A stretch of DNA of 64,000 nucleotides, taken from IMG/VR virus record IMGVR_UViG_3300048121_001678, positions 1-64,000 of that record; one strand, written 5' to 3'. The position numbers and the translations under genes were made by a program. The notes under the pieces are model-generated. The model saw only the letters and a program-made list of their open reading frames with translations. It searched no databases and was not told the DNA's origin. Shown piece after piece: positions 26,464 to 57,255 of the stretch (positions are counted from its first letter, which is position 1; each line of letters starts with the position of its first letter).

Positions 26464-26465
26464 CC

Positions 26466-27632: not shown

Positions 27633-27633
27633 A

Positions 27634-30628: not shown

Positions 30629-33600
30629 TTATAATAAACCTTTTTCTTTAGCAGTTTTTTCTAACTGTGTGATTTCAATTTCTTTACTTAACAAAATAGT
30701 ATTCTGTTGTTGTAATGCTTCTGTTACAACGGCAATTAAAATAGGGTAATTAACAAGCTTAGTACCATCAACTGACTCACTTATCGCTTGAGGAAAATAC
30801 TCCTCAACTTCCTGTGCAATAAAACCAACATTAGGAATGTTTGTAGTTTCTTGAGGAATACCATTAACTACTTCTCTCCATAAAAATGAAACACCTCTCA
30901 TATTGAGAATGCGGTCTAAAGCATCTGACATCACTCTATAGTTTTTCTTTAACCTTCTATCAGATGGTGGTCCTGGTGCACCAACATATCCTTTTGGTCC
31001 TTTATTACCTTGTGGTCCCGCATATCCTTTTGGTCCTTTAGCCCCTGGTTCTGCAGCTGGACCCTGTGGTCCGTAGTTCCCTTGTGGACCCTTAGGTCCG
31101 TCATTACCTGTTGCACCTCTATTACCTTTAAGACCCGTTGGTCCTTTTATTCCTTTATCTCCTGTTGGTCCTGTTGAACCTCCTGGACCTTGTGGTGATG
31201 CCCCTGTTGAACCTTGTGGTCCTCTGACTCCCTGTGTACCTCTAAAACCTTTTGGTCCACCAACACCTTTTGTACCTTTTGGTCCTGGATTCGCATATCC
31301 TTTTGGTCCTTTGTCGTTAGATGTCGGCCCTGTTGAACCTTGGTCACCAATGTCAATCGGTCCTTTATACCCTTTAACTCCTTTAACACCTACTGGTCCT
31401 GTTGAACCACCTGGTCCTGGATTGTTAGCACCTGTTGGCCCTGTTGAACCACCTGGACCTCTAACTCCCTGAGCACCTCTCGGTCCTTGTACCTTTGGTC
31501 CTTTATCACCACCTGGTCCTTGTGGTGACGCTCCTTGAGCACCTCTACCACCTTTCGGTGAATTACCTGTACCACCGACATTACCTCTGAAACCTTTTTC
31601 ACCAACATAACCTTTTGGCCCTTTAGTACCTTTATCTCCGACACCACCAGTATTACCTCTGTTACCTGTTGCACCTTTATAACCTTTTGGCCCTTTTGTA
31701 CCATCAGGTGCGGTTGGACCCTTGTTACCTTTTGGCCCTTTATCATTAGATGTTGGCCCTGTTGAACCTCCACCACCTATATCAATGTTACCTTTAAAAC
31801 CTTTAACCCCTTTTGTACCTACTGGTCCTGTTGAACCACCTGGTCCCGGATTATTAGCACCTGTTGGCCCTGTCGAACCTTGTCCTCCTCTAGCACCTTG
31901 TGACCCTCTTGGTCCTTGTACCTTTGGTCCTTTATCACCCGTAGAACCATTTTGATTAGAACCTTGATTACCTCTATTACCTTTCGGTGAGTTACCTTGT
32001 GGTCCTTTGGCACCTCTGAAACCTTTTGACCCTACAAGTCCTTTTGGTCCATCAGGTCCGGTTGCACCTCTATTACCTTGTGGGCCTGTAGTTCCACCTG
32101 TCCCTCGATTACCTTTTGGTCCATCAGGTGCAGTGTATCCTTTAGCACCTTTCTGTCCTTTATCACCACCTGGTCCTTGTGGTCCAGGATTTGCAGAACC
32201 CGTAGAACCTCCCGGTCCTTGTGTTGAATCACCTACAGGTCCTTGTAGACCTTGGCTACTTGCACCTTGAGGTCCTTGACCACCTTGACCACCAGTGTTA
32301 CCTTGTGCACCTTGTGGTGATGACCCTGTTGAACCTATTGGTCCTGTTGGTGATGACCCTGTTGAACCACCTGGTCCTTGTGGTGAATTACCCTGTGGTC
32401 CCTTGGGTCCTTGGTTCCCTTGGTAACCTTTTACACCTTTAGGTCCTTGTGAACCTTTGTAACCCTTTGGTCCTTTTGACCCTGCAGGTGCGATTGGCCC
32501 TTTTATACCTTTAGCACCTTGTCCACCCTTTTGTCCTTTTTGTCCCGTAGGTCCTGTTGAACCGCCGGGTCCTTGTGGACCTGGATTAGCGAATCCTTTT
32601 GGTCCTTTTGGCCCTGTATTAGATTGCCCTTTTTGTCCTTTAGGTCCTTGATTATTATCACCAGTAGCACCTGTTGAACCTCCACCTCCTGTATTACCTC
32701 TGTTACCTTGTGGTGAACTACCTGTAGCTCCTCTATTACCTTGTGGTGATGAACCTTGTGGTCCTTTAGCCCCCTGAGGTGAGTTACCTTGTGGTCCTTT
32801 AGTACCTTTATTACCTTTATTACCTTTATTACCTTTTGGTCCGTCAACACCCGTAGCACCTTTCGTACCTTTAGCTCCGTCAGCACCAGTAGTTCCTTTT
32901 TGACCTTTCTGACCTTTAGGTGCAGTTGGACCTTTTATACCTTTCTGACCTTTTTGTCCAGTAGGTCCTTGTGGCCCTTGATTACTATCTCCTGTTGAAC
33001 CTCCCGGTCCTTGTGTTGAATCACCTACAGGACCTTGACTACCTTGATTACTATCACCTGTCCCACCTTGGTTTCCTTGACTACCCTGTGAACCTTGTGG
33101 ACCCTGTGGTGATGCTCCTGTTGAACCTCCTGGACCTTGTGGTGATGCTCCTGTTGAACCTGTTGCCCCTTTTGGTGAGTTACCTTGGACTCCTTTGGAA
33201 CCAGTTCCACCTTTCTGTCCTTTATTACCCTTCGCACCTTGTGAACCTTTAAAACCTTTTAGACCTTTTGGTCCTGCAGGTGCTGTTGGCCCCTTGATTC
33301 CTTTTTGACCCGCAGGTGCTGTTGGTCCTTTATCGCCACCAGGTCCTTGTAAACCAACAGGTCCTTGTGCACCTTGATTTGAATCACCAATATCACCTTG
33401 TGGTCCTTGATTTGAATCACCTGTAGGACCTTTTGGTCCCACATTAACGTCACCCTGACCACCTTGTGGTCCTTGAGTTGACGACCCTACGTTACCTTGT
33501 GAGCCCTGAGTCCCTCTATTACCTTGTGGGCCCTGTGGTGATGCACCTGTTGAACCTTGTGGTCCTTGTGGTGAATTACCTTGAGAACCTTGTGGTCCTT

Positions 33601-34687
33601 GTGGTGAATTACCTTGTGGACCTTTTTGCCCTTTTGGTGAATTACCTTGGCTACCTTTAATACCTTTAATACCCTTAATACCTTTAAGACCTTTGTTTCC
33701 TAAACCACCTTTGAATCCTTTAGTACCCTTTGCACCTTGGTTACCCACAGGTCCCTTAATACCTTTTTGACCTTCGTTACCTTTTTGTCCTTTTTGTCCT
33801 GACTCACCTATTGGTCCTTTCTCACCATCTAAACCTATATTCTGTTCTCCTTTGACACCTTTTTGTCCTTGGAAATTATCACCATCAGAACCTTGTGAAC
33901 CTTGAGTAGAATCACCTACGGGTCCTTGTTGACCTGTTGGTCCTGTAGAACCTTCAGTACCTTGACCCCCTTGAGGTGAGTTACCTTGGAATCCTTTTAC
34001 ACCTTTTGGTGATTCACCAACTTGACCATCACCACCTTTTGGTGAATTACCTTGTGGTCCTTTTGCACCTTGTGGTGAATTACCCTGAGTACCTTTAGTA
34101 CCCTTAGTACCTTTTTGACCCTCAGGACCTTGGCTACCTTTTATCCCTTTTGTTCCTTTAAAACCTTTTTGACCTTTTTGACCTAACTCACCTTTTTGAC
34201 CATCAGAACCTTTAGTACCCTTAGTACCTTTTTCACCTACATCACCTTGTGTTCCTGTAATACCCTTAGCACCTTCGGTACCTTTAATACCTTTCTGTCC
34301 CTTTTCAGCATTGATAGATTGACCTTTTACACCTTGGTACCCTGTTGGTCCCTGAGGCCCTTTTTCTCCTTGTTCTGCAGTTGGAGCATTACTACCAACA
34401 TCACCAACACCACCTTTTTGTCCTTTCGCCGATGTGGCTGCCGGTCCTTGCCATACACCTAAATTATTAATCCTATCTTGATTATTAACTTTTACTTTAC
34501 CTGATGTAACATTAAATCGGGATGATGTTTCATATAATGGATTATTATTTAGAATAATTGCGTCTTCAACACCACCAAATATAAGTGTTTGATTAGTTTC
34601 ATCATATGATAGAGTAATCGTTGAATTACTACTACCTGAAAACTCAAATATACCACTCCCCGGTGTTATTTTTATATTTTTACCCAT
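30629..34687 (-). CDS. Collagen-like tail fibre 1 with C-terminal S74 intramolecular chaperone
   Basis: About 1150 aa of interrupted Gly-X-Y; PPSDRRLKKN...GFIAQEVEEYFP...VNY S74 motifs. Confidence 0.9.
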   Translation of the reverse strand: MGKNIKITPGSGIFEFSGSSNSTITLSYDETNQTLIFGGVEDAIILNNNPLYETSSRFNVTSGKVKVNNQDRINNLGVWQGPAATSAKGQKGGVGDVGSNAPTAEQGEKGPQGPTGYQGVKGQSINAEKGQKGIKGTEGAKGITGTQGDVGEKGTKGTKGSDGQKGELGQKGQKGFKGTKGIKGSQGPEGQKGTKGTKGTQGNSPQGAKGPQGNSPKGGDGQVGESPKGVKGFQGNSPQGGQGTEGSTGPTGQQGPVGDSTQGSQGSDGDNFQGQKGVKGEQNIGLDGEKGPIGESGQKGQKGNEGQKGIKGPVGNQGAKGTKGFKGGLGNKGLKGIKGIKGIKGSQGNSPKGQKGPQGNSPQGPQGSQGNSPQGPQGSTGASPQGPQGNRGTQGSQGNVGSSTQGPQGGQGDVNVGPKGPTGDSNQGPQGDIGDSNQGAQGPVGLQGPGGDKGPTAPAGQKGIKGPTAPAGPKGLKGFKGSQGAKGNKGQKGGTGSKGVQGNSPKGATGSTGASPQGPGGSTGASPQGPQGSQGSQGNQGGTGDSNQGSQGPVGDSTQGPGGSTGDSNQGPQGPTGQKGQKGIKGPTAPKGQKGQKGTTGADGAKGTKGATGVDGPKGNKGNKGNKGTKGPQGNSPQGAKGPQGSSPQGNRGATGSSPQGNRGNTGGGGSTGATGDNNQGPKGQKGQSNTGPKGPKGFANPGPQGPGGSTGPTGQKGQKGGQGAKGIKGPIAPAGSKGPKGYKGSQGPKGVKGYQGNQGPKGPQGNSPQGPGGSTGSSPTGPIGSTGSSPQGAQGNTGGQGGQGPQGASSQGLQGPVGDSTQGPGGSTGSANPGPQGPGGDKGQKGAKGYTAPDGPKGNRGTGGTTGPQGNRGATGPDGPKGLVGSKGFRGAKGPQGNSPKGNRGNQGSNQNGSTGDKGPKVQGPRGSQGARGGQGSTGPTGANNPGPGGSTGPVGTKGVKGFKGNIDIGGGGSTGPTSNDKGPKGNKGPTAPDGTKGPKGYKGATGNRGNTGGVGDKGTKGPKGYVGEKGFRGNVGGTGNSPKGGRGAQGASPQGPGGDKGPKVQGPRGAQGVRGPGGSTGPTGANNPGPGGSTGPVGVKGVKGYKGPIDIGDQGSTGPTSNDKGPKGYANPGPKGTKGVGGPKGFRGTQGVRGPQGSTGASPQGPGGSTGPTGDKGIKGPTGLKGNRGATGNDGPKGPQGNYGPQGPAAEPGAKGPKGYAGPQGNKGPKGYVGAPGPPSDRRLKKNYRVMSDALDRILNMRGVSFLWREVVNGIPQETTNIPNVGFIAQEVEEYFPQAISESVDGTKLVNYPILIAVVTEALQQQNTILLSKEIEITQLEKTAKEKGLL

Positions 34688-37600
34688 TATTCAACTATTG
34701 TTTTAAGTGTATTTAATCTATTTTGTAATTTCTCAATAATTACCATATGTTCTTGAACTGTACCAATACCTAAGTTGGTTATCAAATCATATTTTAAAAC
34801 ATGAACACCATCTTTATCTTTAAATATAACCTCGGGTAGTACTTCTTCAACTTCCTGAGCAATAAAACCTAATGACTCACCTTTTAATGTGGGTCTATGA
34901 GTTTTAGTAAAATTGTCATCATTCCATTCAAAATAAAGACCTTTTAACATTAAAAGTTTTTCTAAATTACCTTTTAACCCTTTTAAATTATCTTTATATC
35001 TAATATCCGATGCTGGACCTTGTGCTCCTGTTGGACCTTTATCACCTGTATTTCCTCTACCACCTTGTGGTCCCGTTGAACCTTGTGGCCCTACATCATC
35101 ATAACCTCTAGGTCCTTGTGGACCTTTTTGACCTTTCGGTCCTGGATTGGCATAACCTTTTGGTCCTTTAGTAGTGACCGCATCACCTTGAGCACCTTGA
35201 GCACCTCGTGCACCTTTACTTCCATCCACACCATCAGGACCATCATTGCCCGTGGCACCTCTGAAACCTTTAGCACCTTTATTACCCTTAGGTCCTTTGT
35301 CGTTAGATGCTGGACCTGTTGAACCTTGTGGACCCTGTGGTGATGCACCTGTTGAACCTTGTGGTCCTCTAACTCCTTGTGGTCCTCTATTACCTGTTTG
35401 TTTAGGCCCTTTATCTCCCGTAGGTCCTTGTGGTGACGCACCTGGCGCACCTCTATTACCTTTAGGTGAAACACCCTGTGGTCCTTTGGTTCCTCTGAAA
35501 CCTTTTTCACCAACATAACCTTTTGGCCCTTTAGCACCCTTATCTCCGACACCACCAGTGTTACCTCTATTACCTGTCGCACCTTTATAACCTTTTGGTC
35601 CTTTAGGTCCATCAGCTGCGTTATTACCAACATAACCTTTTGGACCTTTATCATTAGATGTTGGTCCTGTTGAACCACCATCACCAATGTCGATACCACC
35701 TTTATAACCTTTAACACCTTTAGCACCTACCGGTCCTGTTGAACCACCTGGTCCTGGATTGTTAGCACCTGTTGGTCCTGTTGAACCTCCACCCGCTCTA
35801 GCACCTTGTGGTCCTCTCGGTCCTTGAATAATTGGTCCTTTGTCCCCACCTGGTCCTTGTGGTGATGCACCTTGACTACCTCTATTACCTTTAGGTGAAG
35901 CACCCTGTGGTCCTTTGGCTCCCCTGAATCCTTTATTTCCAACAAAACCTTTTGGTCCCTTAGCACCTTTATCTCCAATACCACCAGTTCCACCTCTATT
36001 ACCTGTTGCACCTTTATTACCTTTTGGCCCTTTTGGACCATCAGGTGCGGTAAAACCTTTATAACCTTTCGGTCCTTTGTCGTTAGATGTCGGTCCTTTA
36101 GGTCCCGGATTTGCATAACCTTTAACACCTTTAGGTCCTGGATTTGCATAACCTTTTGGTCCTTTTGGTCCAGGATTGTTACTACCAACATCACCTGTTG
36201 AACCTCCATCACCTGTATTACCTCTTGGTCCTTGTGGTGAAGAACCAGTACCACCTCTATTACCTTTCGGCGATGTACCCGTTATACCTTTAGCACCTTG
36301 TGGTGAGTTACCTGTAGCTCCTTTAGTACCTTTAAGTCCTTTTTGCCCTTTTTGTCCTTTGGCTCCCGCTCCACCAGTAGCACCTCTATTACCTTTTGGT
36401 CCGTCAGCACCAGTGGCACCTCTATTACCTTTTGGTCCGTCAGGTGCAGTATATCCTTTGGTACCTTTATTACCTTTTGAACCCGTAGGTCCTTGTGGTC
36501 CTTGGTTACTATCACCTGTTGAACCACCTGGTCCTTGTGTTGAGTCACCTACGGGCCCTTGTGGTCCTTGATTACTATCTCCTGTTCCACCTTGGTTACC
36601 TTGGCTACCCTGTGAACCTTGTGGCCCTTGGGGAGATGCCCCTGTTGAACCTCCTGGACCTTGTGGTGATGCTCCTGTTGAGCCTGTCGCCCCTTTTGGT
36701 GAATTACCTTGAACCCCTTTGGCACCTTGTCCACCTTTATATCCTTTAACACCTTTAGGTCCTTGTGAACCTTTAAAACCTTTTAGACCTTTTGGTCCTG
36801 CAGGTGCTGTTGGTCCTTTAATACCTTTGGCACCTTGTCCACCCTTTTGTCCTTTTTGTCCCGTAGGACCTGTTGAACCACCGGGTCCTTGTGGTCCTGG
36901 ATTGGCTTGACCTTTTTGTCCTTTCGGTCCTGGATTGGCTTGACCTTTTTGTCCCTTATCACCAGGACTACTAATACCTGTAGGTCCTGTTGAACCTCCA
37001 CCTCCTGCACCACCTCTATTACCTTGTGGTGATGAACCCTGAGAACCTTGTGGTCCTTGCGGTGAGTTACCTTGTGGACCTTTAGCACCTTGTGGTGATG
37101 AGCCCTGTCCACCTTTTATTCCTTTTATACCTTTTATACCTTTGTTACCTTTTGGACCATCAGAACCTGTAGTACCTTTTGTACCTTTAGCACCATCAGC
37201 ACCTGTAGTACCTTTTTGACCTTTTTGACCATCAGGAGCAGTCGGACCTTTAACACCCTTTTGACCTTTTTGTCCCGTAGGACCTTGCTCTCCCTGATTA
37301 CTATCACCTGTTGAACCTTGTGGTCCTTGTGTTGAACTACCTGTTGAACCTTGTGGTCCTTGAGTTGAGGACCCAACCCCACCTTGATTACCTTGTGAAC
37401 CTTGATTACCTTGTGAACCCTGAGGTGAATTACCTTGTGGACCTTGTGCACCTTGTGGTGAAGAACCTGTAATTCCCTGTGGTCCTTGTGGTGAAACACC
37501 TTGAGGACCTTTCTGTCCTTTTGGTGAATTACCCTGAACACCTTTCTGTCCTTTAAAACCTTTTTCACCAATGTTACCTTTCGGCCCATTAGAACCCTTA

Positions 37601-38634
37601 AATCCTTTACTACCTTGGGAACCTTTTACACCTTTCTGTCCTTTATTACCTTGTGGTCCATCATTACCTTTCTGACCTTTTTGTCCTGACTCACCTATGG
37701 GTGCAATTGGTCCTTTGTCTCCACCTGGACCTGTAGAACCAGTTGGTCCTTGACCACCTTGATTCGTTTCACCCTTAGGACCTTTTTGTCCTGGTGTAGG
37801 GTCACCCTGTGGCCCTTGTGGTCCTTGATTACTATCACCTGTAGAACCACCTACTCCCTGTGGACCAGCACCACCTGTTCCTCCTCTTGGGGATGAACCT
37901 GTCGAACCTTGTGGACCCTGTGGTGAGTTACCCTGAGGACCTTTTAACCCTTTTGGTGAATTACCTTGGCTACCTTTAAAACCGTCAGAACCCTGACCGC
38001 CTTTTACACCTTTAAAACCTTTTGGTCCGTCAGGTGCAATATTTCCTTTATCACCTTTATTACCTGATGCACCTGTAATACCTTTTTGACCTTTTTGACC
38101 TTTCGGCGCCGTAGGACCTTTGATACCTTTGATACCCTTATTACCCTTTTGACCCTTTTCACCTACTTCACCAACTAATCCATTATCACCTTGTGAACCA
38201 TTATCACCTTGGAAGGTGTCACCTGTTGAACCTGTTTCTCCTGGATTATTTTGACCTGTCTGACCTTTTTGTCCTTTGAATAAAAGACCTTTATTACCCT
38301 TACTACCCGTACTACCTTTATCTCCTTTAACACCTTTCTCACCAGTATCACCTTTAGCACCAGGTGTTACACCATCACCTTTAGCACCTTTTAAACCCTT
38401 TTCACCAACAACACCGTCTATTCCTATATTACCCTTACTACCCTTATTTGGTTGGTTACCTTTCTCACCAATAGGACCTTTTAACCCCTTAATATTAGTT
38501 GTAGTAGCTGTCCAAATACCATCCTCATTTACTACGTCGATACCACCAACACGTAGACCTTTGTTCATCTTTGTTGGAACGTAAATTTTCATCCTTGTAG
38601 ATGCATCTGCTATGTGAAAAAGATTTTGTTTCAT
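34687..38634 (-). CDS. Collagen-like tail fibre 2 with S74 chaperone; lacks the shared N-terminal anchor
   Basis: Interrupted Gly-X-Y; PASDIRYKDN...GFIAQEVEEVLPE; TAATG coupling to fibre 1. Confidence 0.9.
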   Translation of the reverse strand: MKQNLFHIADASTRMKIYVPTKMNKGLRVGGIDVVNEDGIWTATTTNIKGLKGPIGEKGNQPNKGSKGNIGIDGVVGEKGLKGAKGDGVTPGAKGDTGEKGVKGDKGSTGSKGNKGLLFKGQKGQTGQNNPGETGSTGDTFQGDNGSQGDNGLVGEVGEKGQKGNKGIKGIKGPTAPKGQKGQKGITGASGNKGDKGNIAPDGPKGFKGVKGGQGSDGFKGSQGNSPKGLKGPQGNSPQGPQGSTGSSPRGGTGGAGPQGVGGSTGDSNQGPQGPQGDPTPGQKGPKGETNQGGQGPTGSTGPGGDKGPIAPIGESGQKGQKGNDGPQGNKGQKGVKGSQGSKGFKGSNGPKGNIGEKGFKGQKGVQGNSPKGQKGPQGVSPQGPQGITGSSPQGAQGPQGNSPQGSQGNQGSQGNQGGVGSSTQGPQGSTGSSTQGPQGSTGDSNQGEQGPTGQKGQKGVKGPTAPDGQKGQKGTTGADGAKGTKGTTGSDGPKGNKGIKGIKGIKGGQGSSPQGAKGPQGNSPQGPQGSQGSSPQGNRGGAGGGGSTGPTGISSPGDKGQKGQANPGPKGQKGQANPGPQGPGGSTGPTGQKGQKGGQGAKGIKGPTAPAGPKGLKGFKGSQGPKGVKGYKGGQGAKGVQGNSPKGATGSTGASPQGPGGSTGASPQGPQGSQGSQGNQGGTGDSNQGPQGPVGDSTQGPGGSTGDSNQGPQGPTGSKGNKGTKGYTAPDGPKGNRGATGADGPKGNRGATGGAGAKGQKGQKGLKGTKGATGNSPQGAKGITGTSPKGNRGGTGSSPQGPRGNTGDGGSTGDVGSNNPGPKGPKGYANPGPKGVKGYANPGPKGPTSNDKGPKGYKGFTAPDGPKGPKGNKGATGNRGGTGGIGDKGAKGPKGFVGNKGFRGAKGPQGASPKGNRGSQGASPQGPGGDKGPIIQGPRGPQGARAGGGSTGPTGANNPGPGGSTGPVGAKGVKGYKGGIDIGDGGSTGPTSNDKGPKGYVGNNAADGPKGPKGYKGATGNRGNTGGVGDKGAKGPKGYVGEKGFRGTKGPQGVSPKGNRGAPGASPQGPTGDKGPKQTGNRGPQGVRGPQGSTGASPQGPQGSTGPASNDKGPKGNKGAKGFRGATGNDGPDGVDGSKGARGAQGAQGDAVTTKGPKGYANPGPKGQKGPQGPRGYDDVGPQGSTGPQGGRGNTGDKGPTGAQGPASDIRYKDNLKGLKGNLEKLLMLKGLYFEWNDDNFTKTHRPTLKGESLGFIAQEVEEVLPEVIFKDKDGVHVLKYDLITNLGIGTVQEHMVIIEKLQNRLNTLKTIVE

Positions 38635-38677
38635 CGTTATATATAAATAGTTTAAGTAATTTAAATTTAAATTTTAA

Positions 38678-38818
38678 TTATGTCTCTTGTGAAAATAATA
38701 ACTCACCTGTTGTAGTCATCTCAATCATATAAGTCACCCCCGTACTTCCCGAGAATAAAACATGTGGGTTTGTATTTGCTGTAGTACCCGATGGGTAAAC
38801 AATTATAGTTTTAGCCAT
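38678..38818 (-). CDS. 46-aa stand-alone fibre-anchor-like peptide (not in ORF track)
   Basis: MAKTIIVYPSGTTANTNPHVLFSGSTGVTYMIEMTTTGELLFSQET resembles the N-termini of fibres 1 and 3; TAATG-coupled to fibre 3. Confidence 0.7.
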   Translation of the reverse strand: MAKTIIVYPSGTTANTNPHVLFSGSTGVTYMIEMTTTGELLFSQET

Positions 38819-41800
38819 TATATTTTATTTTTTAAATAAGTAATATCTTTATCAATATCATCAATCAATATCTGTTGTTCTTTAACCGCTTCAACTAAGT
38901 AAGCATTTAATAAAGAATAGTGTATACCTAAATAACCTTCTTTATTTCTAAAGACCACCTCAGGTATAATCTTATCAATCTCTTGTGCAATAATACCTAT
39001 TGAGTGTAATTTATCACGTTCTTTAAGGTACTCGTACATTGGTAAAGTCATGTTCCAATCATACTCCTTTAGTTCAATTTTTAATAACTTATCTAAAGAA
39101 CCAACAAGAGTATTAATTTCTTTTTTCAACCTTATATCTGATGGTGGAGGTGTCGGTCCATTAAAACAGTCTGGTTCTTGTGCAGCCACAAAACAAATAC
39201 TTAAATCAACAAGGTAAATTTCAATAGTACCAGGGTTGTTAATAAATACTATACCACCACGACAACCAGTGTTGTCACAGTTTTCACATCCTGAATCAGT
39301 CAAAAATGTACAATTCATGTTCCAACTCGAACAGTCGGGAGAATAGAAAGTTTGTAAGTTAGGTTCATCACAAATTGCGTCAGGGATATCACAATTGAAA
39401 TAGGTTTGAATTGCATTACAACCACCACCTGGTCCTGGAGGGCCAATGTCACCATTAGACCCTCTATATCCTTTAGGTCCTACACCACCTTGGTTACCTC
39501 TATTTCCTTTGTAAGTAATACCAATATTACCTTTTTGTCCCTTTTCCCCTATTGGTCCTTTTGGTGATGAACCTGTTGAACCTTGTGGTCCTTGATTTCC
39601 TCTAAAACCTTTATATCCTTGAGGACCTTTTATCCCTTTATTACCTTTTGGTCCTGGATTCGCATTACCTTTTGGTCCTTTGTCGTTAGATGTCGGGCCA
39701 GTTGAACCTATACCTCCTCTAGCTCCTTGTCCTCCCGGAGGACCATCAGGTCCATCAGCACCCGTGTCACCTCTGAAACCTTTATCACCAATATAACCTT
39801 TTGGCCCTTTAGCTCCCTTATCTCCGACACCGCCAGTGTTACCTCTGTTACCTGTTGCACCTTTATAACCTTTTGGTCCTTTATCTCCATCAGGTGCGGT
39901 TGGACCCTTGTTACCTTTTGGCCCTTTGTCGTTAGATGTTGGTCCTGTTGAACCACCATCACCAGTATCTATACCGCCTTTATATCCTTTAACACCTTTA
40001 ACACCTACCGGTCCTGTTGAACCACCTGGTCCTGGGTTAGGTGCACTTACGGGACCTAAAGAACCTTGTGGTCCTCTAACCCCTTGTGACCCTCTTGGTC
40101 CTTGTACCTTTGGTCCTTTATCTCCTGTAGGTCCTTGTGGTGACGCGCCTGGTGCACCTCTATTACCTTTAGGTGAAGCACCCTGTGGTCCTTTGGCACC
40201 TCTGAAACCTTTTTCACCAACAAAACCTTTTGGTCCTTTCGAACCTTGGTCACCAACACCACCTTGTGGTCCTCTGTTACCTGTAGCACCTTTATAACCT
40301 TTTGGTCCTTTAGGTCCATCAGGTGCGGTAAAACCTTTATAACCTTTCGGTCCTTTGTCGTTAGATGTCGGACCAGTTGAACCACCATCACCAATGTCGA
40401 CACCACCTTTATAACCTTTAACACCCTTAGTTCCCGTTGGCCCTGTTGAACCACCTGGTCCTGGATTGTTAGCACCTGTTGGCCCTGTTGAACCCGTACC
40501 AGCCCTATCACCCTGTGGACCAACTGGTGAATCACCTGTTGAACCTTGCGGACCAGTTGGTGACGTACCCGTAGAACCTCCCGGTCCTTGAGGTGAGTTA
40601 CCTTGTGGTCCTTTATTACCCGCAGTCCCTTTAAAACCTTTTAACCCTTTTGGTCCGTCAGCACCTTGGAATCCTTTTGGTCCTTTTGGTCCTGTAGGTG
40701 CAATATATCCTTTATTACCTTTTGGACCTGTAGGTGCAGTGTATCCTTTATCACCTGTTGGTCCTGTTTCCCCTGGGTCACCTTGTGGTCCAGGATTGGC
40801 ATATCCTTTTGGTCCTTTTGGTCCTGGATTACCGAAACCTTTTGGTCCTTTTGGTCCAGGATTATTACCACCTGTTGGTCCTGTTGAACCTCCACCACCT
40901 GTATTACCTCTTGGTCCTTGTGGTGAAGAACCAGTTGCTCCTCTATTACCTTTTGGTGATGAGCCTTGTGTTCCTTTGTTACCTTGTGGCGAGTTACCCT
41001 GTGGTCCTTTAGTACCTTTAGTACCTTTATTACCTTTATTACCTTTTGGTCCGTCAGCACCCGTAGCACCTCTATTACCTTTTGGCCCATCAGGTCCTGT
41101 AGTACCTTTTTGTCCTTTTTGTCCATCAGGTGCGATTGGACCCTTAATACCTTTTGGTCCTTTATCTCCTCCAGGTCCTTGTGGTCCTTGGTTACTATCA
41201 CCTGTTGAACCCCCTGGTCCTTGTGTTGACGCACCTGTTGGCCCTTGTGGACCTTGATTACTATCACCTGTCCCACCTTGGTTTCCTTGACTACCCTGTG
41301 AACCTTGTGGTCCTTGTGGTGACGCACCTGTTGAACCACCTGGTCCTTGCGGTGACGCTCCTGTTGAACCATTTCCACCTTTTTGAGAATTACCTTGAAC
41401 CCCTTTGGAGCCAGTTCCACCTTTAAATCCTTTAACCCCTTTAGCACCTTGGGAACCTTTGTTACCTTTATTACCTTTTGAACCAGCAGGTGCTGTTGGC
41501 CCTTTTAAACCTTTATCACCTAACCCACCCTTTTGTCCTTTTTGTCCCGTAGGACCTGTTGAACCACCGGGTCCTTGTGGGCCAGGATTGGCTTGACCTT
41601 TTTGACCTTTAGGTCCTGGATTGGCTTGACCTTTTTGACCTTTCGGTCCAGGATTATTTGAACCTGTTGGTCCTGTTGAACCACCAACACCCGTATTCCC
41701 TTGTGAACCTTGTGGTGAAGAACCTGTTGTACCTCTATTACCTTGAGGCGAGTTACCTTGTGGTCCTTTGGCACCTTGTGGTGAGTTACCTTGTGGTCCT

Positions 41801-43677
41801 TTATTACCTTTTGTACCCTTTTCACCAATAATACCTTTAGGTCCCGTATTACCTTTTTGACCTTTATTACCTTTTGACCCTACTGAACCTTTTACACCTT
41901 TATTACCTTTTGGTCCATCGTTACCTTTCTGACCTTTCTGACCTGGCTCACCAAAAGGTGCCGTCGGTCCTTTATCACCACCTGGACCAATTAAACCAAC
42001 GGGTCCTTGTGGACCTTGATTGGTATCACCTTTAATACCTTTTTGTCCAACATTAGAATCACCTAATTGTCCTTTTGGACCTGGATTTGCATCACCTTGA
42101 CCACCTTGTACTCCCTGTGTTGAATCGCCAACACCACCTTGAGTTCCTTGACCACCTTGTACTCCCTGAGGACCTTGTGGTGATGCCCCTGTTGAACCCT
42201 GAGGACCTTGTGGTGAATTACCTATAACCCCTTTATTACCTTGAGGGGAGTTACCCTGAGTCCCTTTAATTCCTTTTATACCTTTGGCACCTTTAAACCC
42301 TTTGGGTCCAACTGCACCTTTTACACCTTTTACACCAATTAAACCCTTGACACCTTTTTGTCCTTTTTCTCCAGCCTCACCATCAGGTGCAATAGGACCT
42401 TTAATACCTTTAGTACCTTTTTGTCCTTTCTCCCCCGTAGGTCCTTTAGGTCCAGGATTGTTATCACCAACAGGTCCTCGACCACCTTGAGTCTGCTCAC
42501 CTTTTTGGCCTTTGTCACCAGGTATATCTTCACTAGTAGGACCTGTAGAACCTTGGAAATTATCCCCAACAATCCCAACGTTACCCTGAGAACCTTTTAC
42601 ACCTTTACTACCTGTAATACCTTTTGGTGAACTACCTTGACTACCTTGACTACCTTTAGGGTTATTACCTTTCTGACCCTTTTCACCCAATTCGGTTTCA
42701 CCTTTCTGTCCTTTAAGACCTTTCTCACCTGTATCTCCGATATTTCCTGACTGAAACTGTTCAAAACTACCATTAACCATCACATCTGTAGATGTAATGG
42801 AATTAGTTAACGTAACACCATCTAAGAAGTTACCACCATTACTACTAGTTGTTGAACTAAATGTTAATACTAAACTACTATCTGTAGGTGTGAATGTGTG
42901 TGTATTTACTGTCCATTGGCTATTTGATGCAGTATAGTTACCTAAGTTAATATTTGTTGAACCACCAATAATAGTGACATTCATTATATTATCAAAAGAT
43001 GACCTACCTCTATGTGCAAAAGAAAGCACATACTCTTGACCCGAAACTACTGTAACTGTTTGTTGTAAGGCGTGTTTTTGTGATACTCTTGAATTGATTT
43101 CGGCAAAATAACTACCTGAATATGAAGGGACGTTTGAAAATCCACTAGCCCAAATTTCCACTACATTATCTGATGCAGTTGGGTCCCAACCTGGAATACA
43201 GTCTTCATAGAACCATGTAAACGTTGTTGGTGGTGGTGGACACGAACCTCCGAAACCATCTTCACCTTTATCACCTTTTTGACCTTTTACATTTTCACCT
43301 ACAGGACCTAAAATACCTTTTACACCCTTAGCACCTTTATAACCTTTATCACCTTTTACCTGATTGGTACCTTTTTCACCTTTAGGTCCTAAATCCCCTT
43401 TAATATTAGTGTCATTACCTATCCAATCACCAGCACTGTCTATTGTACTTGCTAATTTAAAATCAATGTCATCGACAAAATCAATATCACCCTTAACATT
43501 AAAGTTAAGTGTATCCGCGTCTATTTTTACTATCTCGTCACCCTGTGTTTTTCCTGAAAATACTAAAGAACCATCACTTTCTACGTTCATACGTATTTCA
43601 TCACCACTACTATTTGTGAAAAGAATATACGGGTTACCCCCTGAAGGGTTAGGTACAATTTTTATGTTCTTAGCCAT
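38818..43677 (-). CDS. Collagen-like tail fibre 3 with DUF642/CBM-like insert, Cys-rich tip and S74 chaperone
   Basis: Gly-X-Y stalk; beta-sandwich insert (IPGW...VEIW...FAEIN...LQQTV...LSFAHRGR...FLDGV); Cys-rich segment; PPSDIRLKKE S74 motif. Confidence 0.9.
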   Translation of the reverse strand: MAKNIKIVPNPSGGNPYILFTNSSGDEIRMNVESDGSLVFSGKTQGDEIVKIDADTLNFNVKGDIDFVDDIDFKLASTIDSAGDWIGNDTNIKGDLGPKGEKGTNQVKGDKGYKGAKGVKGILGPVGENVKGQKGDKGEDGFGGSCPPPPTTFTWFYEDCIPGWDPTASDNVVEIWASGFSNVPSYSGSYFAEINSRVSQKHALQQTVTVVSGQEYVLSFAHRGRSSFDNIMNVTIIGGSTNINLGNYTASNSQWTVNTHTFTPTDSSLVLTFSSTTSSNGGNFLDGVTLTNSITSTDVMVNGSFEQFQSGNIGDTGEKGLKGQKGETELGEKGQKGNNPKGSQGSQGSSPKGITGSKGVKGSQGNVGIVGDNFQGSTGPTSEDIPGDKGQKGEQTQGGRGPVGDNNPGPKGPTGEKGQKGTKGIKGPIAPDGEAGEKGQKGVKGLIGVKGVKGAVGPKGFKGAKGIKGIKGTQGNSPQGNKGVIGNSPQGPQGSTGASPQGPQGVQGGQGTQGGVGDSTQGVQGGQGDANPGPKGQLGDSNVGQKGIKGDTNQGPQGPVGLIGPGGDKGPTAPFGEPGQKGQKGNDGPKGNKGVKGSVGSKGNKGQKGNTGPKGIIGEKGTKGNKGPQGNSPQGAKGPQGNSPQGNRGTTGSSPQGSQGNTGVGGSTGPTGSNNPGPKGQKGQANPGPKGQKGQANPGPQGPGGSTGPTGQKGQKGGLGDKGLKGPTAPAGSKGNKGNKGSQGAKGVKGFKGGTGSKGVQGNSQKGGNGSTGASPQGPGGSTGASPQGPQGSQGSQGNQGGTGDSNQGPQGPTGASTQGPGGSTGDSNQGPQGPGGDKGPKGIKGPIAPDGQKGQKGTTGPDGPKGNRGATGADGPKGNKGNKGTKGTKGPQGNSPQGNKGTQGSSPKGNRGATGSSPQGPRGNTGGGGSTGPTGGNNPGPKGPKGFGNPGPKGPKGYANPGPQGDPGETGPTGDKGYTAPTGPKGNKGYIAPTGPKGPKGFQGADGPKGLKGFKGTAGNKGPQGNSPQGPGGSTGTSPTGPQGSTGDSPVGPQGDRAGTGSTGPTGANNPGPGGSTGPTGTKGVKGYKGGVDIGDGGSTGPTSNDKGPKGYKGFTAPDGPKGPKGYKGATGNRGPQGGVGDQGSKGPKGFVGEKGFRGAKGPQGASPKGNRGAPGASPQGPTGDKGPKVQGPRGSQGVRGPQGSLGPVSAPNPGPGGSTGPVGVKGVKGYKGGIDTGDGGSTGPTSNDKGPKGNKGPTAPDGDKGPKGYKGATGNRGNTGGVGDKGAKGPKGYIGDKGFRGDTGADGPDGPPGGQGARGGIGSTGPTSNDKGPKGNANPGPKGNKGIKGPQGYKGFRGNQGPQGSTGSSPKGPIGEKGQKGNIGITYKGNRGNQGGVGPKGYRGSNGDIGPPGPGGGCNAIQTYFNCDIPDAICDEPNLQTFYSPDCSSWNMNCTFLTDSGCENCDNTGCRGGIVFINNPGTIEIYLVDLSICFVAAQEPDCFNGPTPPPSDIRLKKEINTLVGSLDKLLKIELKEYDWNMTLPMYEYLKERDKLHSIGIIAQEIDKIIPEVVFRNKEGYLGIHYSLLNAYLVEAVKEQQILIDDIDKDITYLKNKI

Positions 43678-52667: not shown

Positions 52668-52730
52668 ATATTTTTATTTACCTAAATAATAAGTAAAAAA
52701 AAAGAGGGAGACAACTCCCTCTTATTAACA

Positions 52731-54611
52731 TTATATTACACCACCATAGTAGTTTTTATTAGTTACCCATAGTTGGTAACCCCTTCGTAATAATTCTCGA
52801 CTAAAAGATATGTCAAAATCATCATCAGTATAAATACCATTACCTTTTTGATACACACCAATTAAGTCTGTAATTACATCACTTTTGAACATTATAATAC
52901 CTGTTATATACCCAACACTAAAAGTATCTTTAACGTCATAATTTCTAATTTTATTTTGTTGTTCTGATTCAACATTATAACCGTCTTTATCTGTCCTAAA
53001 CCAAAAATTAACCCAGTCAGTACCCTCACTGACAATCATTGGTGATATTATATTCTTACCCTCAGATATTAAATACTTTATCGAATCCCTATTTCTAAAG
53101 ACGTAGTTACAGTCTAAATTAATAACGTAGTCCACATCATATTTTAAACTTTCGAATAAAGACATATTCCTTTTTTCCGCATTGTTTAGTTTAACATAAT
53201 GTTTTTTAACACTCCTATAAAGGTCTTTGAATTTTTCAATAAACCTATCAACTTTATAGTGATGCTTATCATCATCAAAGAATATTTGTATTTCTATTTT
53301 TTCTTTTGGGTGGTTAAGGTATCTAATTTGGTCAAATACTTGGTCAATATCCGAAACATTAAAATCTAAAAATAAATTTAACAATAATGTATAATCACCA
53401 CCATCAACTTTATCCTTTACAAATATTTCATTATAAATTTCACCTAACTTATCTTTAGTAATTGAAGGTCCGTTACCATGTATTATTGACGGGAATGTTT
53501 TAGTCACTTCATTGTATACACGTCCGTCTTTTATAACAACGTCATCGGTTGCTAAGTTTAATGTTTGAAATATATTTTGGTCATGGTCTAATATCATTTC
53601 ACTATTAGTATCACCATTACCATTTCTCTTAACTAACCACCCATTATTATTATACTTAGACCAATTCTTCAACTTATAGGACGGTAAGACATCTTCAATT
53701 GTGTCACCTTTAAAATCTCCCTCATTAAAATCGACAATCAGTATCACCTCTTTAAAAGTATTAGTTAACGCCTCATATAAACTAATATTTTCATATTTTA
53801 TATCATATATAAATAACACATCAGGTTTACGAACCAAATTATCAACACTATCAACAACCTCATCGTAAATATACTTAATATTATATTCACTATTTAATGC
53901 AGTGATATACTTAAAATGCGAACCAAACAAAATACCATATCTACCGTTTAATGGATTTAAATCGCATAAAACATCTTTTACATCATATTTTTCTCTTAAA
54001 TGTTTTAATATGTCATTTTCAAATTCACCGTAATCAACATTATCAATAGTTGTTTTATCGTGATTAAGATAGTAATCAGTGTAGTAACCTTGGTCATCAT
54101 CAGACTTATTTATGTCAACATCAATCATTTTTTTTATGTGATTACCATAACCCATAAATCCACCTGAATTTAAAAACTTATACTCACCATCAACAATAGG
54201 ATATCTATCAGATAACTCCTGATTTGGCCAACAGGTCTTTTCCGCACTGAAAACCAATGGACGGTTAAACTCCCTGAACTTACGTATTATATTGTTTGGT
54301 GTATCGTTGAATATTACATCATACGAATCAGAAAATAAGATTATAGTATTCTCTAAATCATCCCATTTATTAATCTCATCCCTTAAATAGATTATCTTTT
54401 GAGCCCCACCTGGTTCTAACAACACACCATTCTCTGCACGACCACTCTCCCACTTATCACCTAAACCTAAAATAATATAAGGTATGTTGTTTTTAGTACA
54501 ACTATCCTCGAACCTATCTAAGTTTTCATTTCTGTCTGTTGCGACAGTAATAACGATGAAACGGTCAATACCGTCAGAGTATATGTTTTTAATTTTGTTG
54601 TAGATTCCCAT
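52731..54611 (-). CDS. PLOD (procollagen lysyl hydroxylase/glycosyltransferase)-like GT + accessory domains, without hydroxylase domain
   Basis: TVATD, LGLGDKW, GGAQKI, FSDSYDV, VFSAEKTCWP, FLNSGGFMG, DDDQ..YT, LDHDQNIFQ, IHGNGP, IISPMI and NFW follow the PLOD order; the protein ends before any 2OG domain. Confidence 0.85.
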   Translation of the reverse strand: MGIYNKIKNIYSDGIDRFIVITVATDRNENLDRFEDSCTKNNIPYIILGLGDKWESGRAENGVLLEPGGAQKIIYLRDEINKWDDLENTIILFSDSYDVIFNDTPNNIIRKFREFNRPLVFSAEKTCWPNQELSDRYPIVDGEYKFLNSGGFMGYGNHIKKMIDVDINKSDDDQGYYTDYYLNHDKTTIDNVDYGEFENDILKHLREKYDVKDVLCDLNPLNGRYGILFGSHFKYITALNSEYNIKYIYDEVVDSVDNLVRKPDVLFIYDIKYENISLYEALTNTFKEVILIVDFNEGDFKGDTIEDVLPSYKLKNWSKYNNNGWLVKRNGNGDTNSEMILDHDQNIFQTLNLATDDVVIKDGRVYNEVTKTFPSIIHGNGPSITKDKLGEIYNEIFVKDKVDGGDYTLLLNLFLDFNVSDIDQVFDQIRYLNHPKEKIEIQIFFDDDKHHYKVDRFIEKFKDLYRSVKKHYVKLNNAEKRNMSLFESLKYDVDYVINLDCNYVFRNRDSIKYLISEGKNIISPMIVSEGTDWVNFWFRTDKDGYNVESEQQNKIRNYDVKDTFSVGYITGIIMFKSDVITDLIGVYQKGNGIYTDDDFDISFSRELLRRGYQLWVTNKNYYGGVI

Positions 54612-54644: not shown

Positions 54645-54935
54645 TTAATTAAGAAATATTTTACCGTAGGAAGTTTCAAAGTAGGGTTCAATAATTGATT
54701 TAATCTCTTCCTTTGGTTTAGGTGTAATATTATTTAAATTAATTACCACACTAATAATTTGTTTTTTAGTCAATTCAATTTCTTCACCGTTTTTGTGATT
54801 TTGAAACACCACCTTTTCTATCTCATCAAAAAACTCATCTGGGTCAGCCTTACCAATTAAATTGCTTAACTCATTTGGGTTTTCATTAAAAAACTTTTTA
54901 AAGTTACTTATATAAATTTTAACATCAACATCCAT
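54645..54935 (-). CDS. Hypothetical protein
   Basis: 96-aa ORF. Confidence 0.7.
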   Translation of the reverse strand: MDVDVKIYISNFKKFFNENPNELSNLIGKADPDEFFDEIEKVVFQNHKNGEEIELTKKQIISVVINLNNITPKPKEEIKSIIEPYFETSYGKIFLN

Positions 54936-54985
54936 AGGTGCAATATAATAAAAAACAGGACAAAAGTCCTGTTTTAATGTATTTT

Positions 54986-56379: not shown

Positions 56380-57255
56380 TTAACCCACCAAAGAGTCATC
56401 AATAATATCAGTTAAAGTATAATTCATAATTAATAGTTCAGTCCCTTTTGATTGTGCCTTACCACTACTAGCACCCGCAGCCTTTGCAAAATCTTTAGTT
56501 TCCCACACATATTCGTCTTTTGGAAACCATTCACTTAATAAGTCAAAGTCATAGTAAGATAACGAGTACCTACTCTTAACCTCAGACAATACTTTGGCTA
56601 GTCTTTCATGGTCTTCTCTATCAAAATCATGATTTGAATAATAATTTTCAGTCTTCCAATAAGGTGGGTCTAAGTAAATATATGTCGTTGGTGAGTCATA
56701 CTTTTTAATTACGTCTTCAAAGTCCATATTCTCTACGTGTGTTACCGCCAAAAACTTATTAACCCACTTCTCATTTTTCAACTTATCACGGAAAGTTAGA
56801 AACTTAGATTTATACTTACCCTTTAGGTCGATAAATTTAGAGGTCTCAGGTTTACTACCACTGAATACTGAAGTAAGAATGTATGCATATTTAGCGGCAA
56901 CATCATAGTCAGGACCATTTACCTCAAATCCATCAGCAAAGATTTCACTCTGAAACTGTTCAAACTGTGTACGATAGATATCGGGTGTTGGAAACTCTCC
57001 TCTCTGTTGACAAGAAATAGACTCAACAGCCTTCAATAAATCCTTTGGTTTCTGTATACATTGAAATAAATTATAATTTAATGGATTGAAATCATTATAC
57101 ACAACCCTTTTAAGGTTTGGGAACTTCTCCATATCCATATTATAGAAACACCAAAACATACCACCGAATGTCTCAACATATGTTTCCATATCTTGTGGGT
57201 AATAATCTATAATCCATTTACCAATTCTACTTTTTCCTCCTATATAACTTAACAT
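56380..57255 (-). CDS. D12-class (Dam-like) N6-adenine DNA methyltransferase
   Basis: LSYIGGKS, YVETFGG, VYNDFN, YLDPPY and ELLIMNY. Confidence 0.9.
   Translation of the reverse strand: MLSYIGGKSRIGKWIIDYYPQDMETYVETFGGMFWCFYNMDMEKFPNLKRVVYNDFNPLNYNLFQCIQKPKDLLKAVESISCQQRGEFPTPDIYRTQFEQFQSEIFADGFEVNGPDYDVAAKYAYILTSVFSGSKPETSKFIDLKGKYKSKFLTFRDKLKNEKWVNKFLAVTHVENMDFEDVIKKYDSPTTYIYLDPPYWKTENYYSNHDFDREDHERLAKVLSEVKSRYSLSYYDFDLLSEWFPKDEYVWETKDFAKAAGASSGKAQSKGTELLIMNYTLTDIIDDSLVG

Follow-up and report, generated by a model that had tools for sequence, protein, structure and literature searches.

Organisation of the locus

The window, that is the whole stretch of 64,000 nucleotides analysed here, belongs to a metagenome-derived virus record whose genome measures ~297 kb. 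On its minus strand, positions 52731-54611 hold an intact ORF of 626 aa with an ATG start and zero internal stops. This ORF, its parts and its immediate surroundings are as follows.

52702..52723, minus strand: terminator-like hairpin and T run, directly 3' of the GT-AC stop codon
52731..54611, minus strand: whole ORF (626 aa), predicted PLOD3/R699-type GT-AC glycosyltransferase with a nested degenerate methyltransferase-fold domain
52734..53399, minus strand: accessory (AC) domain, aa 405-626, placed by LH3 alignment, the ORF end being the PLOD AC/LH boundary
53400..53597, minus strand: C-terminal part of the GT domain, aa 339-404, with H378, N380 and K386
53598..54062, minus strand: insert of 155 aa (aa 184-338), with degenerate SAM motifs and a methyltransferase-like core
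54063..54572, minus strand: N-terminal part of the GT domain, aa 14-183, placed by R699/LH3 alignment and R699 mutagenesis (PMC12279948)
54645..54935, minus strand: ORF of 96 aa and of unknown function, directly upstream of the GT-AC gene

The 96-aa ORF is conserved (94-97 aa) at the same position in all related loci examined, and it lies together with the GT-AC gene between two terminator-like hairpins, in a region with 7 such sites versus 2.1 expected.

The genome is that of a tailed jumbo phage and encodes Terminase_6N, a tail sheath, endolysins/peptidoglycan hydrolases, an amidase and tail-fibre chaperone domains, along with a TonB-receptor gene that may hint at the host. A giant-virus (Nucleocytoviricota) origin was rejected on account of the terminase, the phage tail sheath and the peptidoglycan hydrolases, so that the giant-virus frame of the initial annotation, built on mimivirus L230, does not apply. 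A search of the genome for NCLDV capsid proteins gave zero matches, the positive control being silent too.

A predicted PLOD-type glycosyltransferase without lysyl hydroxylase domain

The ORF matches GT_PLOD (PF25342) with 215.3 bits against a cut-off of 27 (E 1e-63), in two stretches divided by the insert. By using phmmer against the PDB, we found that residues 16-183 match residues 14-178 of the human LH3 chain and that residues 339-624 match 187-491 (E 2e-50), with ~155 query residues facing ~8 in LH3 at the insert site. The match spans GT and AC domains up to the start of the LH domain, the C-terminal 2OG/Fe(II) lysyl hydroxylase domain being absent from the polypeptide. The initial annotation, made from the sequence alone, had described GT and accessory motifs of PLOD in order, an ORF ending before the hydroxylase and an insert at ~53600-54060, and these alignments bear out all three; it had not mentioned that the gene runs on the minus strand. 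The AC domain also gave weak matches to Anp1 and COLGALT1, and the whole protein matches mimivirus R699 (E 5e-41).

The proposed structural comparison with PLOD3 gave the same picture. An AF2 model of the whole protein (mean pLDDT 84.8) had LH3 (E 5e-41) and R699 (E 3e-34) as best Foldseek matches, and the GT domain of LH3 (6wfv) matched it with a TMt of 0.86. The overall fold superposes, including the accessory domain, a second Rossmann-like unit C-terminal to the GT domain.

Most R699 residues found to be important by mutagenesis or structure are identical in the query, and nearly all of them are invariant among 88 homologs. First, the N-terminal GT part holds W54, E60, K72, D95-x-Y97-D98 (Mn2+/UDP), E124, W128, N148 and D172-D173-Q174. 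Second, in the alignment D95, D98, H378, W54 and Y97 correspond to R699 D83, D86, H216, W48 and Y85; D172, D173, Q174 and W128 to D162, D163, Q164 and W118; and E124, N148, K72 and N380 to E114, N138, K62 and N218. Third, K386 corresponds to R699 K222, the MAFFT placement of that region versus LH3 being ambiguous, and R699 K438 is replaced by R609 (Lys to Arg). The DxxD motif, the distal His, the uridine-stacking Trp/Tyr and the poly-Asp/Gln, Trp, Glu, Asn and Lys sugar/acceptor residues of the PLOD3/R699 type are thus all present. We propose that the product of the ORF is a GT-A enzyme of the PLOD3/R699 family that depends on Mn2+ and a UDP sugar. It would belong to the collagen galactosylhydroxylysyl glucosyltransferase type with GT and accessory domains, its sugar specificity being a prediction.

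A stand-alone PLOD-like GT-AC enzyme is not new, because R699 of Acanthamoeba polyphaga mimivirus (PDB 9DYT, 9DZS, 9E92), a collagen galactosylhydroxylysyl glucosyltransferase with the same LH-less GT and AC architecture, has been characterised and its structure solved (PMC9546862, PMC12279948). R699 differs from the query in having no insert after the poly-Asp helix (458 versus 626 aa) and in coming from a giant virus of amoebae rather than from a tailed phage, and their identity is ~20-30%. Human LH3/PLOD3 (PDB 6FXK and others) is the best sequence and structure match to the GT and AC domains, and both proteins keep DxxD, His, poly-Asp/Gln and Trp. However, LH3 carries its 2OG lysyl hydroxylase C-terminally in the same chain, whereas the phage encodes its homolog of that domain at a distance of 25 kb, as a protein of its own (212 aa).

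A methyltransferase-fold insert with degenerate SAM motifs

Modelled alone, the insert gave a confident AF2 structure (pLDDT 87.6, pTM 0.84), with a folded class I methyltransferase-like core (aa 196-330) between two linkers of low model confidence (aa 185-195 and 331-336). A structure search with the insert alone, as the initial annotation had advised, returned class I methyltransferases throughout the top 50 Foldseek PDB matches, the highest TMq being that of PrmA (0.70). The query sequence had zero methyltransferase family matches in Pfam at E up to 1, while 13 of the 14 long inserts found in homologs match SAM-methyltransferase families (Methyltransf_23/25/11/12). Short and long inserts are nevertheless homologous (hhalign probability 98.2%, E 3e-14), a relationship detected profile to profile only.

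The alignment of short and long forms located the lost motifs. First, the GxGxG loop is gone: where the intact forms have DIGAGDGKW, the query has DLNPLNGRY, with N and L in place of two of the three motif-I glycines. Second, the acidic ribose-binding residue after strand 2 has disappeared (AVE to ALN). Third, GDVxEH and a segment of ~21 residues (FEY..HHQPDLT), both conserved in long-insert forms, are deleted, and the query insert is ~60 residues shorter than the intact domain. Given the loss of the GxGxG loop, the acidic residue and ~60 residues, the insert is most likely a catalytically dead pseudo-methyltransferase, the shrunken remnant of a methyltransferase domain, and it would no longer bind SAM. 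We suggest that it folds separately, attached by a flexible linker at either end within the loop that immediately follows the poly-Asp helix, and that it descends from an intact SAM-methyltransferase domain kept at the same site by syntenic genes of related phages. The earlier idea of a second catalytic or substrate-binding domain is half borne out: the fold is that of a methyltransferase, and syntenic relatives keep its motifs intact, but the query has lost the SAM-binding motifs.

A feature search of the ESM Atlas with the insert gave scores <=0.78 throughout, all to unrelated families. A HMMER profile of five short inserts returned 0 matches at E <= 0.001 among 1.84 billion representatives, the family itself included, which says little, as the insert is probably either missing from the 50%-identity representatives or present there in the long form, beyond the reach of HMMER. 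In the phage genome, tblastn found no relatives of the nested methyltransferase elsewhere, the sole match being the relic itself (E 0.002).

Loss and constraint of the insert among related phages

Among the 88 homologs, the stretch at the insert site falls into three length classes (3-8, 155-162 and 204-224 aa), and the insert occupies the same site in every class. Examples of the long class are metagenomic phage proteins of 685-699 aa (syntenic) and 915-938 aa (related), among them P0014, P0025, P0044 and P0018, which have the same GT-AC frame as the query and a nested domain at exactly its insert site. In P0014/P0025-type proteins this domain, of 204-224 aa, has intact class I SAM-methyltransferase motifs and Pfam matches, in contrast to the degenerate domain of the query; some of these relatives carry an extra N-terminal GT25 domain. 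We found no published description of them in the literature searched. P0025 and P0047 (692 aa) occupy the query's locus in related jumbo phages, and in this one syntenic locus the methyltransferase is intact in the 692-aa forms, reduced to a short insert in a 627-aa form and missing from a 477-aa form (P0006), all of them presumably orthologous.

In the phylogeny, the query clade comprises 5 short and 8 insert-less rows (support 100/100) and is nested among methyltransferase-bearing forms (support 96/94 and 95/99). AU tests, for which the groups were defined post hoc with the tree already known, reject monophyly both of the insert-less rows (p 9e-8) and of the short ones (p 4e-12). Sister lineages have removed the insert cleanly and completely at least twice and, since they did so, it is dispensable for the transferase.

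Where it persists, the insert looks to be under purifying selection. Among close relatives its pN/pS is ~0.22, against ~0.17 for the core, values that are rough because dS (1.2-2.5) is saturated, and zero frameshifts or stops occur in it over five clusters diverged to ~58% identity. As the insert is still constrained, a residual non-catalytic role, structural or binding, may persist. A functionless remnant heading for deletion is an alternative that we consider unlikely yet worth keeping in mind. The complete losses among the closest relatives, the low-confidence linkers at both ends and a faster divergence than the core in a deeper comparison (44% versus 64% identity to P0004) would agree with it, but the near-core pN/pS, the unbroken reading frames and the well-predicted fold would not. 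That the insert is instead an active second catalytic domain, be it a non-canonical SAM-binding methyltransferase or a new activity, seems very improbable: the compact, confidently predicted fold, the apparent purifying selection and the motif-I Asp, N-P-x-x-G and C-terminal W/GW elements, invariant in the short inserts of the query clade, speak for it, whereas the missing glycines and post-I Glu, the two deleted conserved segments, the lack of any Pfam methyltransferase match and the complete absence of the domain from close syntenic relatives speak against it.

A separate lysyl hydroxylase homolog and a GT25 gene

Beyond the window, at genome positions 78773-79411, lies a gene for a stand-alone LH homolog of 212 aa, accompanied by a diverged tandem paralog. 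The protein matches the LH domains of LH3 (E 1.6e-29) and of mimivirus L230 (6AX6; E 4e-25) and retains HxD, the distal His and the Arg. A stand-alone GT25 (COLGALT-like) gene is found at ~236445-237209. The LH and GT25 genes are 25 kb and 180 kb away from the GT-AC gene, respectively, and share no operon with it. Because the true LH-domain homolog is a separate gene, the pathway is split. The initial annotation had proposed such a split PLOD; the proposal stands, with the gene at 78773-79411 in place of the oxygenases at 25885-28251 that it had put forward as source of the hydroxylase. Those oxygenases, all in the window, are the following.

25885-26463, plus strand: DUF6445
26466-27197, plus strand: 2OG-FeII_Oxy_4/3
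27634-28251, minus strand: 2OG-FeII_Oxy_3

By sequence they are PKHD-like or DUF6445 proteins, unlike the LH domain of PLOD, to which they have generic 2OG-fold similarity only. That one of them provides the hydroxylase in trans seems very improbable. All are enzymes of the 2OG/Fe(II) type adjoining collagen-like genes, and the 27634-28251 protein resembles the phage LH in a generic DSBH core (E 3e-5 with a database of two sequences), but among PDB entries they match PKHD/Tpa1/PiuC-like or 'putative hydroxylase' proteins best (E 5e-6 or weaker), none bears an OGFOD2-like/PLOD LH signature, and tblastn with the LH domain of LH3 gave E 1.3 there versus 4e-33 at 78.8 kb. Moreover, a sulfotransferase and a GT17 are encoded beside them, which points to another modification module.

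When the GT-AC protein and the stand-alone LH were modelled as a complex, the pair scored 0.50 versus 0.00 for the best control, with two of three runs in agreement. This result was graded as weak support: of 80 solved complexes 58 attain the 0.50 mark, as do 2 of 110 mismatched pairs, and passes at <=0.60 comprise 7 of the 80 solved complexes plus both mismatched pairs. The predicted interface involves the AC domain and the C-terminus (residues 420-431, 506-508, 527-530, 558-561 and 620-626). Since LH3 was solved as a fusion, the prediction may reflect memory of that structure, and we claim no binding.

Collagen-like fibres as putative substrates

The window also contains the putative substrates of the pathway.

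30629..43677, minus strand: three collagen-like ORFs (1352, 1315 and 1619 aa) of tail-fibre type

Each of them ends C-terminally in a Peptidase_S74 chaperone domain. Their commonest triplet is G-x-K, and Lys occupies position Y in 91/242, 92/228 and 91/228 triplets, respectively (38-40%). We propose that the animal collagen-lysine pathway of PLOD fusion and COLGALT is here spread over the LH, GT25 and GT-AC genes and that it would act on the phage's own collagen-like tail-fibre proteins, in the probable order Lys to Hyl, Hyl to Gal-Hyl and Gal-Hyl to Glc-Gal-Hyl. As a whole, a phage GT-AC enzyme in a split collagen-lysine pathway, with a dead methyltransferase-fold insert, is in our judgement probably the best explanation of the locus.

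It is rather improbable that the GT-AC enzyme works on an acceptor other than the fibres, be it a free sugar, a small molecule, a component of the host envelope or a different phage protein. Free glucose is also used by R699, making kojibiose (PMC12279948), and the GT gene lies apart from the fibre genes, amid genes for an LRR protein, a Dam methylase and a PcfJ-like protein. Against such an acceptor, LH, GT25 and GT-AC share the genome with three very Lys-rich collagen-like fibres, and in cyanophages (see below) a collagen-like tail-fibre gene precedes the homologous GT25-PLOD-GT gene by ~1.5 kb.

Beyond fibre glycosylation by the present phage, a broader scenario is offered tentatively, as one that may well prove wrong. 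Marine tailed phages, both of the present jumbo-phage lineage and among T4-like cyanophages, might apply the complete animal-type collagen-Lys pathway (hydroxylation, galactosylation, glucosylation) to their own fibres, the nested methyltransferase methylating the Hyl-glycan in most of the jumbo lineage and persisting here as a dead module, e.g. for fibre binding or dimerisation. We know of no methylated Hyl-glycan in animal collagen.

Relation to other collagen-modifying systems

The glycosylation of collagen Hyl is considered a trait of animals, mimivirus being the lone viral outlier. The present locus points to the complete set of enzymes being encoded in tailed phages as well, one by one or in GT25-GT fusions, next to collagen-like tail fibres very rich in Lys. 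This bears on the origins of PLOD/COLGALT and on how phages may tune fibre stability or receptor binding. In the literature searched we found neither this phage setting nor a nested methyltransferase that is intact, degenerate or absent depending on the lineage, and nothing specific on PLOD or lysyl hydroxylase in phages or on a PLOD-nested methyltransferase. The intact, shrunken and deleted states of the methyltransferase, seen at one syntenic locus, make a clean natural experiment on domain death inside an enzyme, and the relatives with an intact nested domain point to a candidate new collagen-glycan methylation. Small LH, GT25 and GGT enzymes compatible with the bacterial cytoplasm could also help to produce glycosylated recombinant collagen in E. 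coli, a stated goal of the R699 work (PMC9546862).

Two described or predicted systems differ from the present one. Mimivirus L230 is a viral collagen-lysine enzyme in which LH and glucosyltransferase are fused, in contrast to the one gene per activity of the phage; it forms Glc-Hyl directly and is not of the PLOD GT-AC type (PMC9546862). A bacterial dioxygenase-plus-sulfotransferase modification of collagen-like and tail-collar proteins was predicted by Iyer et al. 2010 (PMC2938197), a prediction that does not cover the present GT-AC system.

The closest parallel in cultured tailed phages is gp031 of Synechococcus phage S-CAM9 and its homolog in S-8S53, annotated as hypothetical or as 2OG oxygenase. 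These proteins have a PLOD-type GT domain with an N-terminal GT25 fusion and no methyltransferase insert; they match the query in the GT domain only (~34% identity over 27% of the query), with no AC-domain match detected. A small ORF and, directly before their gene, two 2OG oxygenases separate it from the collagen-like tail-fibre gene upstream, so that the cultured cyanophage cassette of collagen-like tail fibre, 2OG oxygenases and GT25-PLOD-GT fusion parallels the set found here.

The ORF encodes an R699/PLOD3-type glycosyltransferase

52731-54611, minus strand: intact ORF of 626 aa (the query)

By searching all PDB chains with phmmer, we found human LH3/PLOD3 as the top match of the query (E 2e-50), query residues 16-183 and 339-624 aligning with LH3 chain residues 14-178 and 187-491, respectively. 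The aligned parts are the glycosyltransferase (GT) and accessory (AC) domains of LH3, and the match ends where its lysyl hydroxylase (LH) domain begins. Pfam GT_PLOD (PF25342) also matches the query in two stretches (215 bits, E 1e-63). An insert of ~155 residues (aa 184-338, nt 53598-54062) occupies a loop that has ~8 residues in LH3. Therefore, the initial annotation, which had described a PLOD-like glycosyltransferase carrying an insertion and no LH domain, was right, coordinates included. A Foldseek search of the PDB with an AlphaFold2 model built from 88 homologs (mean pLDDT 84.8) ranked LH3 (E 5e-41) and mimivirus R699 (E 3e-34) highest; the model superposed on the isolated LH3 GT domain (6wfv) with a target-normalised TM of 0.86.

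R699 is a characterised stand-alone GT-AC protein, a collagen galactosylhydroxylysyl glucosyltransferase (PMC9546862, PMC12279948), and a PLOD-like glycosyltransferase without hydroxylase domain is therefore of a known kind. Most residues shown to matter in R699 could be mapped onto the query, nearly all of them being invariant across the 88-sequence alignment, and the catalytic apparatus looks intact. That the query is a jumbo-phage collagen glycosyltransferase of the R699/PLOD3 type is secure, while we infer its sugar specificity and collagen as its substrate.

R699 residues and their query counterparts (HMMER alignment; PDB chain numbering offset 3)
W48, Y85: W54, Y97
E54: E60
K62: K72
D83, D86: D95, D98
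E114: E124
W118: W128
N138: N148
D162, D163, Q164: D172, D173, Q174
H216, N218: H378, N380
K222: K386
K438: R609 (Arg)

The insert is very probably a methyltransferase fold that lost SAM binding

At the insert site, homologs fall into three length classes:

3-8 aa (insert-less): proteins of ~474-481 aa
155-162 aa (short): five clusters of 626-633 aa, query included
204-224 aa (long): proteins of 685-699 aa, or of 915-938 aa with an extra N-terminal GT25

Motif I (DxGxGDGKW), a GDVxEH segment and an invariant Glu following strand 2 are present in the long inserts, 13 of the 14 match Methyltransf_23/25/11/12, and these signatures mark them as class I SAM methyltransferases that are still intact. 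Profile comparison shows homology between short and long inserts (hhalign, 98.2%, E 3e-14). In the query, motif I reads DLNPLNGRY, Asn replaces the Glu after strand 2, and the GDVxEH segment has been deleted along with a second one of ~21 residues, conserved in long forms. When modelled alone (pLDDT 87.6, pTM 0.84), the insert retrieved class I methyltransferases as all top Foldseek hits (PrmA, TMq 0.70), and in the full model it stands apart as a domain of its own, joined by two linkers of low confidence (residues 185-195 and 331-336). Thus the second catalytic or substrate-binding domain previously proposed does have a methyltransferase fold, but its SAM motifs are changed or deleted. Very probably the domain has lost SAM binding, and it would be the dead, inactive relic of a methyltransferase once nested here.

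The same methyltransferase subfamily also occurs stand-alone (about 165-173 aa) and fused to GT2 (about 370 aa), proteins P0322-P0334 being of these kinds. This recurrent tie to glycosyltransferases hints that the intact nested enzyme may have a glycan-related role, such as glycan methylation.

Long, short and insert-less forms share one locus

The intact (692 aa), short (627 aa) and insert-less (477 aa) forms sit at one and the same locus in related phages, and for this reason we treated them as orthologs. Genes shared at this locus are, in order, Hc1, DnaJ, MORN, Dam methylase, LRR protein, a 94-97-aa ORF, the GT gene and PcfJ-like, followed, on contigs reaching that far, by glutamine synthetase, thioredoxin, glutaredoxin and a giant (presumably collagen-like) ORF; some relatives also have a TonB-dependent receptor there.

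54645-54935, minus strand: 96-aa ORF directly upstream of the GT gene

All related loci examined retain this small ORF (94-97 aa), and its product may work together with the glycosyltransferase. Terminator-like hairpins (54952-54975 and 52702-52723) bracket the two genes.

In an IQ-TREE phylogeny of 458 core columns, insert excluded, the clade holding the query has 13 members, 5 short and 8 insert-less (support 100/100), and lies within a set of clades that bear the methyltransferase (96/94 and 95/99); short and insert-less members occur together in both its subclades. AU tests rejected monophyly of the insert-less rows (p 9e-8) and of the short rows (p 4e-12), the groups having been named after seeing the tree. 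Internal deletions are common to all short forms, and excision boundaries differ between P0006, the syntenic 477-aa relative, and P0012. In the simplest scenario, an intact ancestral methyltransferase shrank once and was afterwards cleanly excised at least twice, independently. Among close relatives, pN/pS is about 0.22 in the insert vs 0.17 in the core (dS saturated) with no frame disruptions, and the insert is apparently still constrained there. Stand-alone GT-AC proteins being a known kind, what appears undescribed in the literature searched is the setting in a phage and the series of nested-methyltransferase forms.

Lysyl hydroxylase and GT25 are encoded by separate genes

Using vertebrate LH3 as tblastn query, we obtained a strong LH-domain match outside the window, the first of the three genes listed here:

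genome 78773-79411, minus strand: stand-alone LH, 212-aa ORF
genome 79543-80154 (L001:9544-10155), minus strand: diverged tandem LH paralog (25% identity)
genome ~236.4-237.2 kb: stand-alone GT25 (COLGALT-like), 254-aa ORF

The 212-aa protein matches the LH domains of LH3 (E 1.6e-29) and mimivirus L230 (E 4e-25) as well as Pfam OGFOD2-like and 2OG-FeII_Oxy, and its HxD, distal His and 2OG-binding Arg are invariant across 42 homologs. The paralog retains HxD and the distal His, its 2OG-binding Arg being not aligned. In this phage the collagen-lysine pathway is split gene by gene, the query being one of its parts. The split PLOD of the initial annotation thus does have a separate hydroxylase gene, but not among the oxygenases at 25885-28251 from which it had been expected; these are DUF6445 and PKHD/Tpa1/PiuC-like, with only generic DSBH similarity to LH.

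Metagenomes commonly contain stand-alone LH proteins (~204-213 aa), several of which share the exact length of their longest contig with a GT-AC homolog (80288, 50043, 63024); this suggests that both co-occur on the same contigs. Complex prediction for GT-AC and LH scored 0.50 (best control 0.00; graded weak support), the interface involving the AC domain and C-terminus as in the LH3 fusion. Since this may echo the solved LH3 structure, we do not claim binding.

Collagen-like tail fibres are the likely substrate

30629-43677, minus strand: three tandem collagen-like tail-fibre ORFs, each ending in Peptidase_S74

Each ORF has about 230-240 G-x-y triplets, in which Lys is far ahead of any other residue at Y (91/242, 92/228 and 91/228 triplets, ~40% G-x-K); Pro often fills X and is not one of the leading Y residues. 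In PLODs, lysine hydroxylation canonically targets X-Lys-Gly. These fibres are likely the substrate of the query pathway. Their ORFs have a GC of 0.38-0.48 vs about 0.32 elsewhere in the window and regularly spaced interruptions, and the third has a weak DUF642 match (23.9 bits, below the cut-off of 27).

The cultured T4-like cyanophages S-CAM9 and S-8S53 have a parallel cassette of tail fibre, small ORF, two 2OG oxygenases and a GT25 + PLOD-GT fusion of ~615 aa, about 1.5 kb downstream of the tail-fibre gene:

L012:2365-4206: S-CAM9 gp031, GT25 + PLOD-GT fusion
L011:2230-4095: S-8S53 GT25 + PLOD-GT fusion

These fusions are unannotated or mis-annotated (hypothetical or 2OG oxygenase). The S-CAM9 fibre has a 59-triplet collagen run with Thr or Lys at Y, rich in G-x-K and G-x-T.

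Together with two further modification genes that they adjoin, the three 2OG-type oxygenases at 25885-28251 lie directly upstream of the fibre genes, with a sulfatase further off:

23933-24700, minus strand: sulfotransferase
28307-29776, plus strand: GT17
5587-7188, minus strand: sulfatase

Oxygenases, sulfotransferase and GT17 could form a separate, second fibre-modification module for hydroxylation plus sulfation; their adjacency fits the modules that Iyer et al. 2010 predicted for bacterial collagen-like proteins (PMC2938197).

The virus is a tailed phage

The record (297,164 bp, estimated 99% complete), whose first 64 kb form the window, is the genome of a tailed phage:

genome 218.9-219.6 kb: Terminase_6N large terminase
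genome 161.3-161.8 kb: tail sheath

It also encodes peptidoglycan-binding and cell-wall hydrolases and an amidase. The intramolecular chaperone Peptidase_S74 is typical of phage tail fibres. With terminase, tail sheath, cell-wall hydrolases and Peptidase_S74 fibres present, the mimivirus frame of the earlier reading does not apply. A search of the record for an NCLDV capsid gave no match, its control giving no signal either. No tRNA genes were found within the window. It holds auxiliary genes that are a typical jumbo-phage load:

45482-46612, minus strand: glutamine synthetase
58691-59629, minus strand: DnaJ chaperone
11494-12435, minus strand: thymidylate synthase
19452-20327 and 56380-57255, minus strand: DNA adenine/N4-N6 methylases

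The window further encodes a receptor:

48150-50708, minus strand: full-length TonB-dependent receptor (Plug + beta-barrel, signal peptide)

GC at the receptor gene is somewhat above that of its flanks. The gene is found at the same place in a related phage contig (L013:14136-16667) and is absent from another relative (L003); it therefore seems to be a genuine, variably present auxiliary gene and not an assembly chimera.
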